NCBI RefSeq assembly: GCF_000142905.1
Contig: NW_013657656.1
Location: 344,991-408,990, forward strand
Direction of reading: 5' to 3'
Source: Thecamonas trahens ATCC 50062
Taxonomy: Eukaryota > Protista > Apusomonadida
DNA length: 64,000 nucleotides
This document shows, in pieces, positions 14,044-36,949 of the stretch. How positions within the stretch are numbered: position 1 is the stretch's first letter; every line of letters starts with the position of its first letter. A model generated the notes under the pieces. It was not told where the DNA came from. It did no database searches and worked only from the letters and a program-made list of their open reading frames with translations. Both the position numbers and the translations under genes were made by a program.

Positions 14044-16616
14044 CTACTCGTTGAACCAAGCTGAGATCTCGGCCTGCTTCGTTGCGACAAAGGCCATGAT
14101 AAAGTCGACAGAGTCGGCTTTGGAGAGAACGCCTTCGGGCGTCTTGCCACCGATGGTCGGGTGGGGGAGAAAGGTGGTGTCCTGGTTATCAAAGATGAGC
14201 TCGGAGTGGACCTCGACCATGGATGTGGGGAAAAAGCCGACTTCGTCCGAGTCGACGAGCCGGCCGTGAAGCCAGCGCATGTCCGAGGTCGGCTTGACCT
14301 TGTCGAGCATCTGGTTAACCTCAAAGGACAGCTCGTCGTCGCGCTTGCCGTGAAAGGGGAAGAGCGGACGGGCGACCGAGACCATGCGGCCGCCGACGGC
14401 GAGGAGTGCCTGGAGGGCAAAGTCCATCTTTGGGGCAAGGGCGTCGAGCGTGAGGTTGAGAGCCTTCATGTACGGCGAGAGGGTGCCAAACTTTGCGCCG
14501 TTGGCCAGCTTTTGGATGGCCTTAGTGGTGAGCACCAGAGCTTTGCTCTCGCCGCGGCTCGGTGGCGCCGCAATGACGCCAAACTTATCGGCGAGATGAC
14601 GGCCGGACAGACAAAGCGGAGGAAGAAGAGCGAGCCGGTGACGGTGCGGCACTCGTTGGGGAACTTGTGCTGGGTTGCGGCAAAGAGGGACTTGAGCAGG
14701 AACTTGACCAAATCGGGCACCTCAGCGACACGCGACATGACCGACGACGCAAGCATCATGACGCCGGAGCACATAGCAGCAAGGGCGTGACAGACGGCGG
14801 CAAGGTCGACACCGTCGGTGCTACTCAGGCAACTGGCAAGAGGCGGCTCGCCGAGAGCAGCTTCCATGATCCGCCGCTGCTCAAAGTCGGTCTCGGCAGC
14901 GGTCATTGCGGCGTTGAGAATCCACTCCAAGGCGTCGTCGGTCAGCTCGCCAGAGAACGCCTTAGCGGTGGCATACGCCTCGGCATGGCTCTGGATGTAG
15001 GCGACGGGCTCGGCCATGGTGGCATGGAGAAAGTCGCCGCCGGCAGCGTTGAGGACGGCGGTGATGACCTTGGTTGAGAGGGTGTTGCCGCGGAAGAGCG
15101 AGAGCGCAAGCTCGCGCGGCGTCTTGCGAACCTCGTAGTTGACCAGCATCTGAATGAGTGGCAAGAGGCGGCGGTCGTCGTCGAATACTCTGATGCATGG
15201 CCAGACGAGGGTGTCGGCCTCGGACGAGGTGGCGACCGAGACGAGGACCGAGAGCAAGGTCCCGTACTGGTCGGTGAGCACGTTCTCAAAGGCGTCGGCA
15301 TCGTCGGTGGTGAGCCAAGAGAGAATGGCCGAGTGATCCTCGGCCTTGAGCTCGTGGTTCTCCTTCTCGTGCTTGAACATCGAACCGAGTTTCTGCGACA
15401 TGCGCGACATCCACTTGGGCTTGCGCGCAGAGTTGTCAGACCGCAGCCGCTCCTCGCCAAGCTCGAGGAACTGTTGGTAGATCGAGGGAAAGTGCGACAT
15501 GGTCGACACGCACACGTCTTTGGACAGGACGCAGACGGCAACGTCCGAGACGGCCTTGACCGACGCTGTCCGCTTCTTCTCCAGAAACAGCGCAATCTCG
15601 CCGAAAAACTGGCCAGCAATCAAGCGTGGGTTCTCACGGGCAACTCGCTTGGGCAGTTCGATCTCGACCACGCCCGAAACTAGAAAGTACATGGCCGTGC
15701 CCTTGCCGCCGACCTTGACAACGTACTCGCCGGGCTTATAGTGCTCAATGACAACCTCTTGCAGTAGACGGTCCAAAAACCGCACGCTCTCGGTCACATA
15801 CTTTGAGTCAATAGTGAGCGACATCCGCCGCTTGCGCATCCGACGCTGCGACGCCCCAAGGTCGGCAATCGGCCGCGGCGAGAGCTTGGTCCCGGCCGAT
15901 GAGACAGACGCCGAGCTCACTGCCGACGCCAGGCTCGCCGCCGACGTCGCACTTGCCGCCGACAGCGAGCCGCCGTCGAGACCTTTGCCGGTTCCGCTAG
16001 AGCTTAGCCGTGACCAGTGCGGCTGCTTGGCCGCAGGCACGGCCGAATCAGACGAGCTCGAGCTCGTTCCACCGTCGTTGGCAAAGCCAGAGCTTGCGCT
16101 GGATCCCGAGCTTGAGCTTGAGGCGTCGTCCGAGTCAGAGGTACTCGAACTGGTGGTCGAGTGGTCACCAGTGCTAGACGAGCTCGAGTTCGAGCCGCCC
16201 GAGCCACCGGACGAGTCGATGGCCCCGCGCATGGCGCTAATGTCGATCGAGGCCGACGATGTCCGGGCGATGGTAATCTGGACGCCGAGTGGCGGCAGGG
16301 TCGAGGCCGAGCCAATGGTGGTCAGGCCGGGTGGGGCCGAGCCGAGAATAGCCTCGGTATCGTGCGAGCCGTCTATGTTGCGCTGAGCGACTTCGGCGAG
16401 CGAGGCCGAGGAGACAGTGGAGACGTTGACGCCAACGAGCCAGTCACGCGGCGGAAGAACACGTAGTGCAGATGGACGATGGGGTATGATAGGCGTCACC
16501 GTGGCACAGGGCTCGTCGTCAGACAGAGCACCTTCCTCACGGTCGACAGCTAGCGTCCGTGAGAGAAGCAGAGCTTGCTTCAACTCCAATGAGGCCACAT
16601 CATTGTCGGAGGCCAT
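14044..16616 (-). CDS. cNMP-binding domain + RasGAP + SH3 protein; apparent frameshift at about 14590
   Basis: GQFFGEIALFLEKKRTASV (cNMP cassette); SLFRGNTLSTK, FFLRFVCPAVISP and KAIQKLAN (RasGAP); LFPFHGKRDDELSF..WLHG..GFFPTSMVE (SH3); one added base gives ISP-DKFG. Confidence 0.88.
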
Positions 16617-17487
16617 GGTCCCGTACAGAGAGAGCGAGAGAGAGACAGAGACAGAGAGACAGACAGACTCAGTGCCCCCCCTGTTACAGCCACCCCTCTT
16701 GTGAAGTGCGCTAACACTTCCCTTAACTTAGGGGAGGGGTGGGATGACCGATGAGCTCCCCCTCTCCTTGTTCAAGGCGGGAGGGGGAAGGGGGGGTCCG
16801 GGAGTGTGCCTGGAGGCAATTCGGATCGGCCGCAAAAAACTCGTCGAGGTGTATGAAAAGGGAGAGAGAGACCCACGCCGCTGTCAGCGGTCTTTTTTTC
16901 ACGGCAAAGAACACGGGGCAGAGAGGGAGGAGGAGAGGGAGGGGAGGATACGCGGGGGGGAGGGGGGGGGGGGGAGGGAGGGGGGTAACCATCGATATTC
17001 ATCAAGTTGTTGTTCATGTTGTCAATTGAAAGGCAGGCAAGAAACAACCAACAAGTCAGGTCCGAGAGGGAGGGAAGGGAGGGGAGACACAGATGTAGGT
17101 CGGTGTTGGGATGCTCGGCTCGATGAGAGTTCAGTTTGAGGGTTGAGGGCTGAGTGAGAGGCTATGCTTGGTAGATTGCAGTGGGTGGTGAGGGAGAAGG
17201 CGGGTACGGGTGGTGAGTGTCTGGGCTTCATCTCGAGTCTGCTGCCTCAAGTGTGCGTCTGGGCTGAGCCGAGGGAGCAACCACTACAGCAACCACCAAC
17301 TACATCACGCCCACACAAGGATCGACGTGTTTCAACAGCACCTCATACCCGCATTGACATAACAGCAAGCGATGGCGAGGCGGGTGACTGCGGAAGGAGG
17401 AAGGAAGAGGGGGGGGAGGAGGGAGGGGGGGGGGGGGGGGGGGGGGGGAGACAACAAGGCGACGAACGACGTACCAACCACGCGCCG

Positions 17488-31207: not shown

Positions 31208-31989
31208 TCAGCAAAGTTAAGGAGAGGTGTAGCAGCGTGCGAGGCTCGGCTGGGATATACCCAGAACCCAAATCAGATCGAATGCCACAGCGTGCGCATC
31301 AAGAGCAGCTCAAGAAGGTACCCTCGCCCGGCGCGTAGCCAGTCAGCTGTCTGTGGCTGTGGAGGTGAGCGTCTCCAAAGTGCGCCGCTTATGGATTGAC
31401 AACCCAGGGCATGGCACCCAAGGCGTCCCTACGCATTGCTGCTGGCGAGATCAGGCTTATATAAGCTGCGTTCATCACGGCATGACAGACCATCCCGGCG
31501 TCCGGCGTCTCGAGGTGATTGGGCGTGGCGAGTAGCACCACAGGAGTCCACACAGCGGGCGGTCAGCGATGGTCGCTAGCGCAACACATGCACACCACGG
31601 TGCTTCAGCGCCATCGCCAACACAACGGAGCACACTTTGTGTGCCGAGCAATGGCGTTACCGCTGGACACGTCAGGCGAGGCTATCCCAGTCGAGTCTGC
31701 CGTGCTTCGATAGCAATCATCTGTGCCGTCATGGAACACTGACGACAGGCTGACTTTGGGTCGTCGCACGAGAGTCACGGCCACGGGGCAAGGGGAAAGA
31801 CACTCGACGCAAGTCGCCTTGTCTTTACGGACCAACACACATCGGTAGGCAAAGAGTTTGCCACAGAGACCAAGGCGGTGTCGGAGCAGACTCCGCCAGT
31901 CGGTGTAGGTCACGTCAGTGTCGGTGCCGGGAGCAAGGAACAAGTCGAGGCCGGCGATCAAGGCAGGCGAGCAGGGAGGTCACACAGCA

Positions 31990-33365
31990 TGTTGGCCGGC
32001 TTTACGGTCTCAGACTCATGCTCGGGCAATGGTGGCGATAGTAATGATGCCATTTATGCCAGGGCTGCAGTTGGTGTCGCTGCGACGGCCTTACCGGGCT
32101 TGCCGGGCCATGGAGGTGTGCCGTCGGACTCGATGTCCGACTCGAACGAGGCAGCCAATGCGAGCACAGGCGTCGCGGTGGCGCCAGTGGCCGAGGAGGC
32201 CGTGGCAGAGGCAGAGCGTGAAGCGGCCCGGCGCCAAAAGTTATGGGCAAGGCAGATGATGGTGCTTAGCTCGTCGAGCTCGTCGAGCTCGTCAAGCTCA
32301 TCGACGACAACGACGTCGGGGTCACTGAGCTCAACTTCGTCGACCGCGAGCTCGTCGTCGACCACCGGGTCGCATTTGAGCGCAGAGGCGCGGCAGTGGC
32401 GAAATCGGCCGTGGCGGCGGCAGCAGCGGCAGCGAAGGCGGCGGCGAAGGCGAAGGCGAGTGCGGCGGGATGAGGCATCATCGCCGCCTCTGCGGGTGCG
32501 GGCGCTGAATCTTCCGATAGACGAGGCCGGCCGCCGGCCGCGCTACTTTTGCCACGGATGCCGACGGGCCGGCGTGAGAGTGACGCCCGACCTGGCGTGT
32601 ACCTCGTGTGGCTCCGATTTTGTGGAGGAGCAAGCCGCCGTCGGAGGCGTGGACGGCGAGGCGATGCCGGCCTCGCTCCGCAACATGTTCTCGGTCATTC
32701 TCACCGGGCCAGGTGGATGGTCGTCTTCGGACGACAACGAGGAGGGAAACAACGAGAACGACGATGGGACTCCGGATCTTTCATCGATCTTTTCACAGCT
32801 TGTGCGGTCGCTGCTGGCGGATCTTGTGTCGAGCAACGAGCAGCTGGCCATGCAGTCCGGCGGGGTGCCGGGCGGGCGGAGCGGAAAGGCAACCAACCCC
32901 GAGGTTGTGGAGCAGCTGCCGATCATTGCGGCGAATAAGGCGGAGCAGGCCTCGCTCTGCCCAGTGTGCCAGGACGAGCTCAATCCGGAGGTTGGAAGTG
33001 GTGGCGGCCGGGCTGGTCCGTCGGACCCAGAGCTGGCCAAAGCCAATTGCGCCGACGGTGATGCCAGCGGAAGCCAGGCCACAGCGCCGCAGGCACGGAA
33101 GCGATCCAAGCTCCGAAACTTGTTGACCAAGTGGCGGACTGCACGGGCGCGGAGCAAGGCCGGACGGGCAAAGAAGGCGACCAAGGCCGAGGTGGTGGCG
33201 CGCCGCGAGGCGCGGACGGCCAACCCGTTTGACCCGGATGCGTACGCCGCGACCGACGTCTTTGTCCTGCCGTGCAGCCACCAGTTCCACGCCCAGTGCC
33301 TCATACCGTGGCTAGAGACTAACTCATCTTGCCCACTCTGCCGCGCCGACCTCAACACCAGGTAA
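31990..33365 (+). CDS. RNF115/RNF126-like RING-H2 E3 ligase with zinc ribbon
   Basis: YFCHGC..CTSCGSDFVEE zinc ribbon; CPVC ... LPCSHQFHAQCLIPWLETNSSCPLCR; start uncertain. Confidence 0.85.
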
Positions 33366-33822
33366 ACAGACCCCGACGTGAGTCACAGTCCCTCGCCCAG
33401 GGCGTCGCCCAGGGCGTCGCCCAGGGCGTCGCCAAAAAAAATGAGCGGTTGCATGAAGGCGCGGCGGAGCCAACGTTTTGCTGGGGGCGCGAGAGGCGGG
33501 CGAGAGAGGACGGGCCGGAGAGGGGAGGGGAGGGGAGGGGGAGGCAGGGGCGACCGGGGACAGGAGACGGAAGACAGCACACTTGACGGACACCCACGGG
33601 TGTTGCAGACGCAGGGAGAGCCAGCCGGTCGTAGAGCACGGCTAGTAGGTCGCTTGCGAACGAGGCAGGAGCCCCTTCCCAGGACCCCCCGTTGTTGCGG
33701 GTGGCGGCGGCGTGCGTTCCGGGGGCAAGCCGGCTCCGGGAACAGCAGCAAGGCGCAGGGGAGAGCGAGGAAAAGAGAGGAGGGACGGGCGGCAGGCAGA
33801 GGAGACGCGTGCAGGCGTAGGC

Positions 33823-35409
33823 ATGTCGGGACGCGGACGGGTCGACTCGTCGGCGCTGGAGAAGCGGCTGGACGAGATGGAGGCCTCCATGGACGTCGAG
33901 TTTGAAAAGCTGCAGTCGCTTATCTCGCGCCAGAAGCGGCGTGGGTCGTCGGTGGACCTGGCAACGAGCACGGGCTCGGCGGGCTCGTCGCCGGCACTGG
34001 GCCTGGCGACACCTACTATCGACACAAACTTGTCCTCGCGGTCCATTTCGGGACTTTCGCCGGGCGCCGCCGACGTCGCAGGCTCGCCTGGGCGGCGTGT
34101 GGGGCGGTCGCCACGGTCGGGCAAGTTTCCGTCGGCGGCGTCGCCGCGGGCGTCGCCACGGTCGGCACGGTTCCCGCCGCTCTCGCGGCCAGCTCACTCG
34201 GCAGGCGACTTGCTCAGCCGCGACGGGCCGGAGCAAGGCGGTGGATCCGCCGAGTTTGTTGTGACGCCGGTCAAGGCGCAACGGCGGAACTCGTCATCGG
34301 GCTCGCTCGAGTTTTCTGATGACTCGGCCGACGGCGGCGAGTACGGGACCATGGTTCGTGCCCGCGGTGGGAGCGCAGGCCAGGCAGCCGAGGACGAGGA
34401 GTCGAGCTCGAGCGTGGAGACCGGGACCATGGTACCGAATCGCGCGGCCGCCGGAGGCGACGAGGCTGCAACCGACGAGGAGGTCAAGTACTATCACCAG
34501 CCCAAGCGGAAGAAGAAGCGAAAGGACGACCCTTCGCTGCCGCACCGGTACCGTGACGGGCGGCGCGGGTCATCGGCGTCGAGCCTCCGACCCAGCTCGG
34601 GCACCTCGAAGCGGCGGACAAGCTCGCGGTCGGCATCGCCGGCGGTGGCGGCGGCAGCAGCGGCGGCCGGCCTCAACGTAGTTGGCTATCCGCGATCGAG
34701 CTCGCCCGGTGGGAGCTCAGGCGGGGCCGGGTCAGACAGGGTCCGGCGTCACCGGCGGAGCTCGTCGCGGGCGCGGGCTAGCGAGGCGGGTGGCGGCGGG
34801 CGGACAGCGACGAACAGGCGGGCCGAGTCGACGGCAAACAAGCGGAACGGGGCGGACTCATCAGGCGACGGCGACGATGTGTCGACGCTGCGGCGGAAGC
34901 GGCGCCGGCGAAAGCGGCGGTACGAGGACCTGCGGGTGCTCTCGGTCGACCAGCTCTCGGCCCGGCTGGTGGTCCTGGAGGCGCGGCAGGCGGCGTCGAT
35001 CAACAAGTGCAAAGCCAACTACTCGGCGCTGCGGCTTGTCATCTCACGAATGATCGAGATCCAGTCTGCGCCGTCACGGAGCAAGCCGAAGAGCTCAAGC
35101 CGGAGCTCGACGTCGCGCGACCGGGCGTCGCGGTCGTCACGCCGGCGCAAGGCCCCGTCGTCGTCGGCCTCGTCGTCGCCAGACTACGGGACCTCGGTCC
35201 GCCGACGGACAACAGGCGCCTCTGCCTCAGGCTCGGACGTCTCAGGCTCCGGCTCGGGCTCGGGCTACGACTACGGCACGGCGGTGATGCAAAAGCCAAA
35301 GGTCAAACCGTCGTCAGACGGCGGCAAGCGCGGAGGCAAAGCCAAGGCCAAGAGCACACAGCCCGAGACCGAGTTTGATGCCTGGTTTGCCCAGCAGCAG
35401 AAAAGGTAG
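33823..35409 (+). CDS. Disordered S/R-rich protein with SARAH-like helices and no kinase domain
   Basis: YEDLRVLSVDQLSARLVVLEARQAASINKCKANYSALRLVISRMIE aligns by eye with MST1 SARAH (YEFLKSWTVEDLQKRLLALDPMMEQEIEEIRQKYQSKRQPILDAIE); two GTMV motifs. Confidence 0.7.
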   Translation: MSGRGRVDSSALEKRLDEMEASMDVEFEKLQSLISRQKRRGSSVDLATSTGSAGSSPALGLATPTIDTNLSSRSISGLSPGAADVAGSPGRRVGRSPRSGKFPSAASPRASPRSARFPPLSRPAHSAGDLLSRDGPEQGGGSAEFVVTPVKAQRRNSSSGSLEFSDDSADGGEYGTMVRARGGSAGQAAEDEESSSSVETGTMVPNRAAAGGDEAATDEEVKYYHQPKRKKKRKDDPSLPHRYRDGRRGSSASSLRPSSGTSKRRTSSRSASPAVAAAAAAAGLNVVGYPRSSSPGGSSGGAGSDRVRRHRRSSSRARASEAGGGGRTATNRRAESTANKRNGADSSGDGDDVSTLRRKRRRRKRRYEDLRVLSVDQLSARLVVLEARQAASINKCKANYSALRLVISRMIEIQSAPSRSKPKSSSRSSTSRDRASRSSRRRKAPSSSASSSPDYGTSVRRRTTGASASGSDVSGSGSGSGYDYGTAVMQKPKVKPSSDGGKRGGKAKAKSTQPETEFDAWFAQQQKR

Positions 35410-35454
35410 CCGCCATCAACTGCGGCGGTCACAGCATTCGCTGCTGATTGTTGT

Positions 35455-36681
35455 TTACTCAGCGTCGGGCTTGGTAGCCTCCGCTTGGGCAAGCAGCTCA
35501 CGGGCAGCCTCGCGCTGCGACGACTCGAGCGCAGCACGGGCGCGACGCTCACGCATGTGGGCCACAAACTTGCGACCGACGTTTTCATGGCCGTAAAACT
35601 TGAGGAGAAGGCGGACGTCGGCAACCTTGTCGGCGACGACGGCACGGAGGAAGGGGAGCAGGGCGCCGAGCTCATTGTCGCCCGGCGCACCTGTCCACGC
35701 CGGGACGAGCAGAACGTTGTCCGGGTGCGAGGCGACGCGGCTTGGATCAGCCTCAATGGAAATGACCCTGTGAAGCGGGCGGTTGATCCGCGTGAGGTCC
35801 TTGACCGGCGCCCCGTCGTCGTTACTCTTGCACGACGGCCGGTACAGCTTGTATGCAAACATCTTCTCAAACGGATCAATCGAGCTGAGGACCGGGCCCG
35901 AAACAATGAACGACTTGACCGACCAGACCACAACTTCGTAGAGCGACGAGACCTCGCGGAGGAACGCGTCCATGCCCGGCCGCTTGAGCGTCTGGAACCC
36001 GGTCCGTGCATCGTACTTGGTGTGGATGAGCACCTCGTCGAGGCCCACAATGAGCGTGTACGGCTTGTAGAACGGAGGCGGGAGCGGGTCTGGGAGCAGC
36101 GGCTTGTTCGACTCGCCGGCAATCGAGTTGTACATGTACTTGCAGTTGGCCACAAGCTTGGCTACCAGCCCGGCGTCCTTGCCCTCATACAGCGGATGGT
36201 CCTCGGGAATGTCAAAGGTCGAGAGGACGTACGTCGACGACCCGATCGAGAACAGGCCCAGCAGCGCGAGCGAGATCCGGGCCCCGGTCGAGAGCGGGTT
36301 CTGTAGCGGCATCGGTGCCGAGTAGTCAGTGTCGAACGGGTCGTACGGGTCCTTCTCGGGGCCCTTCCACCACGGCCGCTTCTTCTCGCCTGCCGCCGCC
36401 GCCGCCGCCTCGCCCTCGCCTGCCGCCGCCGCCGCCGCCTCGCCCTCGCCCGCAGCTGTTGCTCCAGCGGCCGCAGCAGTTGCAGCCTCGTTCTGACCGG
36501 CACCCGAGGTCTCCGCGCTTGGTGTCGGCTCCTTGGCCTCACCGCTGCTGCCGTCCTTGGCCGCCGCCGCCGCTGGCGTGGTACGGACGCCGCGTGCAAC
36601 CATGTGCTCGGCGGCGCTCAGAGCCCGCGGTGCCGAGCACGACAGAGATGTTCCCACCCGCGAGTACAGAACGCGCAGCAT
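35455..36681 (-). CDS. TIM50: Mitochondrial import translocase subunit Tim50
   Basis: Transit peptide, single TM, PLLPDPLPPPFYKPYTLIVGLDEVLIH..KRPGMDAFL..VKDLTRINRPL. Confidence 0.93.
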   Translation of the reverse strand: MLRVLYSRVGTSLSCSAPRALSAAEHMVARGVRTTPAAAAAKDGSSGEAKEPTPSAETSGAGQNEAATAAAAGATAAGEGEAAAAAAGEGEAAAAAAGEKKRPWWKGPEKDPYDPFDTDYSAPMPLQNPLSTGARISLALLGLFSIGSSTYVLSTFDIPEDHPLYEGKDAGLVAKLVANCKYMYNSIAGESNKPLLPDPLPPPFYKPYTLIVGLDEVLIHTKYDARTGFQTLKRPGMDAFLREVSSLYEVVVWSVKSFIVSGPVLSSIDPFEKMFAYKLYRPSCKSNDDGAPVKDLTRINRPLHRVISIEADPSRVASHPDNVLLVPAWTGAPGDNELGALLPFLRAVVADKVADVRLLLKFYGHENVGRKFVAHMRERRARAALESSQREAARELLAQAEATKPDAE

Positions 36682-36949
36682 GGCTTGCGAGTGTGTAGCG
36701 AGAGGTGTGTGCGAAGAGCACAGCGGGCGTGGTAGTCCAGGGCGCGTCATGGTTGATCGAGGTGTGATGTGGGCGGATCGTCAGTTTCCTGCTCGATTCG
36801 AGTCCACAGTGAGTGATACAGCGTTGATGAGCAGGAGAACTTGACTAGAGGCAAAGAAAGAGTGCAGAGTATGCACGTAGTAGGGGTGGGATGCAAGCGG
36901 AGAAGGGACGGAGGAGAACGAGGACGAAATGACGACAACGCAAGAAACT

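Follow-up and report, generated by a model that had tools for sequence, protein, structure and literature searches.

A kinase-less, largely disordered protein of Thecamonas trahens with a SARAH-like helix and MST-linker-type motifs

In animals, SAV1 and the RASSF proteins are kinase-less SARAH partners of the MST kinases. Surveys credit Thecamonas trahens (Apusozoa, the sister group of Opisthokonta) with Hippo/MST and Mats/MOB1 only, and date Salvador-type adaptors later (PMC7035326). A stretch of 64,000 nucleotides from T. trahens ATCC 50062 (hereafter the window; positions 344991-408990 of contig NW_013657656.1, G000:C24 of the 28.7-Mb assembly) contains a gene for a 528-amino-acid protein that a preliminary description, made from the letters alone, had read as a Hippo-pathway scaffold or decoy binding the kinase through a SARAH helix and presenting docking sites in trans. 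The question raised by this locus is whether a protist of this lineage has a kinase-less SARAH protein of its own. Our analysis suggests that the product is a protein without a kinase domain, disordered for the most part and probably nuclear, in which the module of an MST tail is found in rearranged form, and which may serve as an adaptor or substrate of MST, a reading that we consider evenly poised.

The protein is composed of 19% Ser, 13% Arg, 12% Ala and 11% Gly. In an AlphaFold2 model generated from the single sequence, the predicted local distance difference test (pLDDT) score lies below 50 at 382 of 528 residues, with approximately 72% of the chain predicted to be disordered. Confident helices are predicted at residues 9-39, 350-371, 375-415 and 515-527, together with a short low-confidence helix at residues 273-281. 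The gene and the elements of its product are located as follows, in window coordinates:

33823-35409, + strand: the whole gene, a single exon for 528 amino acids, with the ATG at 33823 and the stop codon at 35407-35409 (open reading frame, ORF, and translation)
33847-33939, + strand: N-terminal amphipathic helix, residues 9-39 (pLDDT 82-89), the most conserved element and identical in the TARA Oceans orthologue P0001
34339-34356, + strand: motif 1, EYGTMV, residues 173-178, with T176-M, followed by R-A to give GTMVRA as in the MST linker
34417-34434, + strand: motif 2, ETGTMV, residues 199-204, with T202-M, followed by P; it parallels FDTMVP of a RasGEF, and DTGTMVR occurs in the apusomonad MST P0003
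34504-34524, + strand: basic cluster KRKKKRK, residues 228-234, read off the sequence; from composition only, a likely nuclear localisation signal
34891-34920, + strand: basic run RRKRRRRKRR, residues 357-366, predicted to lengthen the helix N-terminal of the kink (helix 350-371 of the model)
34921-35067, + strand: helix 2, a SARAH-like helix-kink-helix, residues 367-415, with a short arm to 371, a break at 372-374 and a long helix at 375-415
35182-35199, + strand: motif 3, DYGTSV, residues 454-459, with T457-S, followed by RRR
35269-35289, + strand: motif 4, DYGTAV(M), residues 483-488, with T486-A; the RasGEF counterpart is YDCGTAVM
35365-35403, + strand: C-terminal short helix, residues 515-527 (pLDDT 66-77), with F518-D-A-W-F522, a candidate HS-like half of a MOB1 ligand

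The preliminary description had placed a SARAH-like segment at about 34921-35058 and proposed a search with the Mst1_SARAH profile. The sole match of the protein to this Pfam model (PF11629) covers residues 367-404, starting at nucleotide 34921, with 13.0 bits and an E-value of 0.11 against a gathering cut-off of 23.1 bits, so that the proposed check located the segment where it had been seen and left it below the curated cut-off. Taken alone, this first-pass evidence would be noise. A hidden Markov model (HMM) of our own was built from the 91 distinct C-termini of 120 MST kinases and has 51 positions; residues 368-412 align to positions 3-47 of it, 45 positions in all, without a gap. The isolated helix 2 scored 15.2 bits against this model, a value that no shuffle reached, either in 3000 that preserved the hydrophobic/polar pattern or in 3000 full ones. 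Across 925 six-frame ORFs from the DNA that we collected, the model gave 63.4 bits for the T. trahens MST, 14.4 for the 528-amino-acid ORF, 13.3 for the RasGEF, 12.9 for a Muted-like protein and 8.7 for the TARA orthologue, with 6.3 bits for the best ORF that had not been chosen for its SARAH-likeness.

Besides helix 2, the sub-threshold SARAH matches of the genome in Pfam lie in the Muted-like protein (16.9 bits) and in an internal helix of the RasGEF (12.3 bits). The latter protein was missed by a search of the T. trahens genome with the whole 528-residue sequence and surfaced only through this weak match:

G000:C27, ~14181-17294 (L006:2185-5295), - strand: RasGEF of 1037 amino acids with RasGEF_N and RasGEF domains and an internal SARAH-like helix at residues 401-447

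BLASTP aligned helix 2 with the RasGEF helix at an E-value of 4e-7, with 21 of 60 residues identical (35%). The likeness extends to four collinear elements, which in the RasGEF's order are ETGTMVP, the helix, YDYGTAVM and EFDAWF of our protein; the RasGEF has FDTMVP upstream of its helix, and DYDCGTAVM and then EFQAW downstream. The RasGEF differs in that its module stands upstream of the RasGEF_N and RasGEF catalytic domains, with approximately 590 residues following the SARAH-like helix, and in that its helix is flanked on either side by one motif rather than two; nothing corresponding to the conserved N-terminal helix was detected in it. The RasGEF is a second kinase-less protein with the same collinear module. 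The best-supported interpretation of our protein is that it is assembled from parts of the MST tail (linker motifs, a SARAH helix and perhaps the HS helix), as one of at least two such proteins in the genome. No RasGEF with a SARAH helix turned up in a full-text search of the literature.

The two helices were combined into a two-sequence profile, A2, which was aligned by hhalign to the MST SARAH alignment over 43 ungapped columns with a probability of 93% and a P-value of 3e-7. The score of 33.8 compares with a maximum of 19.0 in 800 column shuffles (400 pattern-preserving and 400 full). In a search of 177,635 distinct PDB sequences, a set of natural decoys rich in coiled coils, profile A2 gave 34 matches at E<=10, and all 34 were Hippo or MST1 SARAH chains, Fv-clasp chimeras included, led by 6bn1_A (E 0.027) and 2jo8_A (E 0.086). 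Used alone against the PDB, the RasGEF helix found Hippo at an E-value of 0.6 amid noise and helix 2 found nothing; single-sequence searches with the whole protein or with helix 2 retrieved no SARAH chain. That the signal sharpens when the two helices are combined is the behaviour expected of true homologues. In pairwise Smith-Waterman shuffle tests, helix 2 gave a p-value of 0.003 with the T. trahens MST SARAH and of 0.17 with that of a relative. As the SARAH chains of SAV1 and RASSF were not retrieved from the PDB by profile A2, and as Pfam gave no match to Nore1-SARAH (PF16517) in the 528-residue protein or in the genome, helix 2 appears to be of the MST type. Profile-profile comparison and reciprocal search thus place helix 2 within SARAH as a remote homologue, an assignment that we regard as very probable; the sole Pfam match lies at the segment first noticed, and the similarity is beyond chance once the RasGEF paralogue is added.

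The predicted structure and the residues of the dimer interface point in the same direction. The SARAH domain of MST1 consists of helix h1 (432-437) and helix h2 (441-480), and SARAH helices form both homodimers and heterodimers (PMC4089488). In the ungapped alignment Y367 of helix 2 stands opposite MST1 Y433, and of the 13 interface hot spots that Hwang et al. list for MST1, nine are identical in helix 2 (L436, L444, L448, L451, I459, Y466, R470, I473 and I477), the same count as in the SARAH domain of T. trahens' own MST; the conserved Pro472 is absent. Helix 2 therefore appears to have retained the conserved interface residues of a SARAH domain. The AlphaFold2 models break at 372-374 in helix 2 and at S363-P365 in the T. 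trahens MST, which is the same alignment column and corresponds to the h1/h2 kink of MST1 (S438-T440), and the helices that follow are 41 and 42 residues long, respectively. The short helix, kink and helix of about 40 residues that typify SARAH are thus all predicted for helix 2. It resembles the SARAH domain of MST1/2 and Hippo (PF11629; 2JO8, 4NR2, 6BN1) in being a helix-kink-helix of about 46 residues, aligned without gaps, with nine of 13 hot spots and the break in the same column, and differs from it in scoring only 13 bits, in being internal and in having no kinase attached. We class it as SARAH-like because its score falls short of the Pfam threshold and its position is not C-terminal, while remote homology, hot spots and predicted structure all agree with SARAH.

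The second part of the module comprises the G-T-x-V motifs. EYGTMV, ETGTMV, DYGTSV and DYGTAV had been noticed in disordered sequence and are found there, at residues 173, 199, 454 and 483, with the overall pattern [DE][YT]GT[MSA]V. Searched as a DNA pattern, [DE]YGTxV has 17 occurrences in the genome of 28.7 Mb, three of them in this ORF, and a reversed-pattern control has seven; the sequence counts indicate that the concentration of motifs in the ORF is beyond chance. The T. trahens MST linker contains DYTGTMARV and DDGTMVRA, both of which are kept in two related MSTs of apusomonads. The linkers of apusomonad MSTs conserve GTMVR, chimpanzee STK4 likewise has GTMVRA, and GT[MTVSA][VI] is found in the linkers of 111 of the 120 MST kinases. 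The aromatic form of the motif is typical of amoebozoan-type MSTs, with YGTMV (P0048) and YGTAV (P0028) occurring verbatim in their linkers. BLASTP of the protein against the T. trahens MST and chimpanzee STK4 aligned only the GTMVRA stretch (E 1.1 and 0.17). The DNA pattern for GTAVM occurs 19 times in the genome, in an acidic-Tyr context only in motif 4 and the RasGEF; the 17 other matches, which lack this context, were set aside as chance. Also attributed to chance were an EYGTMV on contig C13, which is antisense to an F-box-like gene, and paired GTMVR matches on contig C44, which flank an assembly gap. This gap (a run of N within G000:C44:255500-262500) lies between duplicated sequence with an AINR-coding tandem repeat.

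Animal MST kinases autophosphorylate the threonines of the TM sites in their linker, to which MOB1 and the SLMAP FHA domain dock (PMC5663475, PMC4511216), and the residue at +1 of the phosphothreonine fills a hydrophobic pocket of MOB1 (PMC4511216). By sequence, T176-M and T202-M would be docking motifs of the MST-linker type with the exact TM dipeptide, and T457-S and T486-A variants of it. A further element of MST2 is the HS motif FMDYF, a short helix engaging MOB1 jointly with a pTM site up to ~43 residues upstream (Ni et al. 2015, PMC4511216). The C-terminal helix of our protein holds its sole Trp and its sole match to F-x-x-aromatic-F, 32 residues from T486 to F518. The likeness of FDAWF to the HS motif is a five-residue pattern, paralleled by EFQAW in the RasGEF, and we treat it as a lead. 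The protein would resemble the bipartite MOB1 ligand of MST2 in having acidic-G-T-M/A-V motifs and an F-x-x-aromatic-F helix, whose spacing of 32 residues lies inside the ~43-residue range. It differs in that these elements would act in trans to the kinase, in that the HS-like helix follows the SARAH-like helix instead of preceding it, and in that the two motifs nearest to the HS-like helix have Ser or Ala at +1.

Potential partners for such a module are encoded by T. trahens. Its genome holds a true MST/Hippo kinase, whose SARAH domain scores 34.8 to 39.7 bits in Pfam, and at least four MOB genes. The MOB1 orthologue keeps the phosphothreonine pocket (K153, R154 and R157) and F167 of the HS-binding site, and has Tyr in place of H164. 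Two of the MOB genes are:

G000:C3:384800-386600 (L031): close MOB1 orthologue, two exons
G000:C14 (L028:446-1108): MOB paralogue with F167 of the HS-binding site replaced by Lys and H164 by Tyr

Three apusomonad-type MSTs from metagenomes and EukProt (P0003-P0005) have C-termini that are clearly SARAH, yet they are without a precomputed PF11629 match; their linker and SARAH domain are 61% identical to those of the T. trahens MST. That bona fide SARAH domains lack a PF11629 match indicates that the curated model is insensitive in this lineage.

The protein had further been described as having no kinase, WW or RA domain, and this holds. Pfam gave no match to Pkinase, WW (down to E<=10) or RA in the 528 residues, and nothing kinase-like was found in the whole 64-kb window, the best tblastn match of the T. 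trahens MST having an E-value of 3.4. The sub-threshold Pfam matches to DUF1192 and ANG-1 were discarded as functionally uninformative. Sequencing reads searched with 5,501 letters around the ORF yielded no credible joint connecting it to other exons. Joints 32360->35158 and 32469->35603 were set aside, as they come from metatranscriptomes, have 21 letters on the shorter side and lie in low-complexity DNA coding for Ser/Arg; four further read runs of uncertain kind are collinear with the genome and uninformative on transcripts. That the protein is kinase-less is confirmed as far as genomic sequence can tell. The window is GC-rich (58-72%), and the coding frame was examined because spurious long ORFs are common at such GC. 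The N-terminal part of the frame is supported by the TARA orthologue and the middle and C-terminal parts by the RasGEF paralogue, and an identical 528-residue sequence is present in the ESM Atlas, which implies the same one-exon structure for the public gene model.

Comparison with known systems sets the protein apart from each of them. It has no catalytic domain and is thus not an MST/Hippo kinase (STE20/GCK-II). It resembles SAV1 and RASSF1-6 in being a non-kinase protein with a SARAH-type helix that, judged by its sequence, could heterodimerise with MST. Unlike Salvador (SAV1), it has no WW domains upstream of the SARAH-like helix, and unlike RASSF it has neither a Ras-association domain nor a Nore1-type SARAH. 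As it lacks WW and RA domains and its helix is of the MST type, it is not an orthologue of SAV1 or RASSF. It also differs from both in carrying MST-linker motifs, which are not known from SAV or RASSF.

We propose that the SARAH-like helix would pair in antiparallel fashion with the SARAH domain of the T. trahens MST, as those of Salvador and RASSF do in animals, and that the MST tethered in this way could phosphorylate the threonines of the G-T-x-V motifs. The phosphothreonines, with FDAWF as an auxiliary hydrophobic element, might then recruit MOB1 or an FHA protein, and the protein, as an adaptor or substrate, would offer docking sites in trans or else compete for them. The binding and phosphorylation events, the localisation and the direction in which the pathway would be affected are inferred, as is the 'scaffold or decoy' role of the preliminary description. 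The sequence premises of that description withstand our tests and are strengthened by them; the Pfam score, however, stays below the gathering threshold, the helix is not at the extreme C-terminus, and the N-terminal helix is not demonstrably SARAH. The basic clusters at residues 228-234 and 357-366, with an RS-like composition, suggest a nuclear protein. The same anatomy and the suggested nuclear residence would also suit a decoy, which would bind MST through its SARAH-like helix or use its phospho-motifs to titrate MOB1 or an FHA-phosphatase, and would thereby weaken or buffer signalling, perhaps by nuclear sequestration. Such a role is in keeping with the situation in animals, where MOB1, an activator, and STRIPAK-SLMAP, an inhibitor, are recruited by the same pTM sites (PMC5663475). 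However, our results do not distinguish the sign of the effect, and localisation is judged from composition only; we think a pure decoy very unlikely.

Several observations weigh against an adaptor or substrate of MST. The Pfam score of helix 2 is 10 bits below the gathering threshold, and when helix 2 is submitted as an 80-residue piece the SARAH match is lost and DUF1192 scores higher, at 18 bits, also sub-threshold. An unrelated helix of the same genome, in the Muted-like protein, reaches 12.9 to 16.9 bits against SARAH, though over 22 columns only. The equivalents of M455, E458 and K480 are not conserved in helix 2, which is internal, with 116 residues after it, where a canonical SARAH domain is C-terminal. 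Helix 2 also resembles the RasGEF helix more than it does the MST SARAH, and its partner could be the RasGEF or itself. In two of the four motifs the +1 residue is Ser or Ala, not a large hydrophobic residue. The sole orthologue is a fragment that spans only the N-terminus, and cross-species conservation of the SARAH-like helix and motifs is thus not covered by it. The only expression evidence for the gene comes from identical contigs in two metatranscriptomes; these contigs match 34840-35059 and 35304-35738 and are compatible with expression, which they do not prove.

The weak single-sequence scores could mean that the resemblance arose by chance, the protein being a disordered, nuclear and Ser/Arg-rich product particular to this lineage, whose amphipathic helices are generic and whose SARAH and TM likenesses are convergent low-information features. 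The sub-threshold Pfam score, the comparable score of the unrelated Muted-like helix, the higher score of DUF1192 on the isolated piece, the Ser and Arg content and the unspecific outcome of single-sequence searches of the PDB, the protein atlas and Foldseek are what such a protein would give. It would not account for a profile whose PDB matches are Hippo or MST1 SARAH without exception (34 of 34), for an hhalign score far above the shuffle maximum, for the identical hot spots, for a kink in the same column as in the T. trahens MST, or for the co-occurrence of independent MST-linker motifs in the protein and its RasGEF paralogue. We now think chance resemblance unlikely.

The RasGEF paralogue that argues against chance raises another explanation, in which helix 2 is related to SARAH but has a partner other than MST: it would form a homodimer or pair with the RasGEF helix, the protein would regulate or adapt the Ras exchange factor, and the motifs would serve another kinase or reader. 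By the BLASTP and shuffle values given above, helix 2 resembles the RasGEF helix far more than it does the MST SARAH, the two proteins have four collinear elements in common, and SARAH helices are known to homo- and heterodimerise (PMC4089488). On the other hand, every part of the module (linker motifs, SARAH and HS-like helix) is MST-like, the hot spots of the MST1 heterodimer are kept, and both proteins could bind MST. A partner other than MST seems to us rather unlikely, and pairing with MST is the interpretation that we retain.

The preliminary description had also seen a second, similar helix at the N-terminus. This helix is real and strongly conserved, and it shows no resemblance to helix 2; its weak likeness to the central part of SARAH is only suggestive. 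It aligns to positions 12-31 of our MST-SARAH HMM with 13.3 bits when isolated (shuffle p ~7e-4), and by hhalign to the MST SARAH with a probability of 74% and a P-value of 2.8e-5, a score equalled by one of 400 hydrophobic/polar-preserving shuffles; its profile retrieved no SARAH from the PDB. Its conservation is known from the only orthologue found:

L004:5075-5386 (TARA Oceans scaffold ERZ2783005 scaffold_15528): orthologue P0001, with the N-terminal helix identical and the remainder diverged

This 103-residue product was the single relative returned by phmmer among 1.84 billion representative proteins. Codons 6-42 show 14 synonymous differences and no replacement, with divergence directly downstream, which indicates that the N-terminal helix is under strong purifying selection. 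The orthologous ORF ends after 103 amino acids, 13 nucleotides short of the contig end, by an intron, a frameshift or true divergence, and it is flanked by other genes (CD36, a mitochondrial carrier and an EF-hand protein) than in T. trahens, so that synteny is not kept.

Other searches for relatives were negative. A word-indexed homology search with the whole protein gave no match, two scans of JGI metagenomes found no relatives, and no contig encoding the exact protein is on record. Profiles A2 and A5 revealed no further family members in the genome, the first-pass filter of the search being limiting. The ESM Atlas gave no usable feature matches for the protein; the structural neighbours of the lone helix in it are uninformative, two of ten carrying SARAH, and Foldseek with the low-confidence model returned nothing. 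The helix of the Muted/BLOC1S5-like small ORF (L002:1393-1695, G000:C22), EIEAEAERIRAKYHK, which has 16.9 bits against Mst1_SARAH over 22 columns, is a natural false positive.

Two genes flank the locus:

31878-33365, + strand: upstream neighbour, a RING-H2 gene
35455-36750, - strand: downstream neighbour, a convergent TIM50/NIF gene

The stop codon of the RING-H2 gene lies inside AG/GTAAAC, a good 5' splice-site string (window 33355-33366), and the nearby acceptors are upstream of the ATG at 33823. Splicing of this gene into the ORF was rejected, as neither nearby AG acceptor is in frame and no read joint supports it. At the other end, the stop codons of the 528-residue gene and the TIM50/NIF gene are 45 nucleotides apart, and one metatranscriptome contig covers both 3' ends (window 35304-35738) with zero mismatches, which suggests that the 3' untranslated regions of the two genes overlap. 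Marine and subsurface metatranscriptomes hold contigs identical or nearly identical to window 32041-33308, 34840-35059 and 35304-35738, indicating that T. trahens or a very close strain lives in the sampled environments.

Taken together, these data lead us to a wider suggestion, which we put forward tentatively and at less than even confidence: that kinase-less SARAH adaptors exist outside Holozoa, apusomonads having spun off the MST tail, linker plus SARAH, into two or more other proteins, an independent adaptor layer and a Ras-Hippo link that parallel Salvador and RASSF. The sequence of the RasGEF makes it a possible direct link between Ras and Hippo in a protist. For the annotation of the family, curated thresholds miss divergent SARAH domains in the apusomonad lineage. 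If the protein and the RasGEF do dock MST and present phospho-docking sites, scaffolded Hippo architecture would be older than thought or would have been invented repeatedly, a direct exchange-factor link between Ras and Hippo in a protist would mirror the effector link provided by RASSF in animals, and the origin of SARAH-mediated regulation would become testable with a few recombinant proteins.

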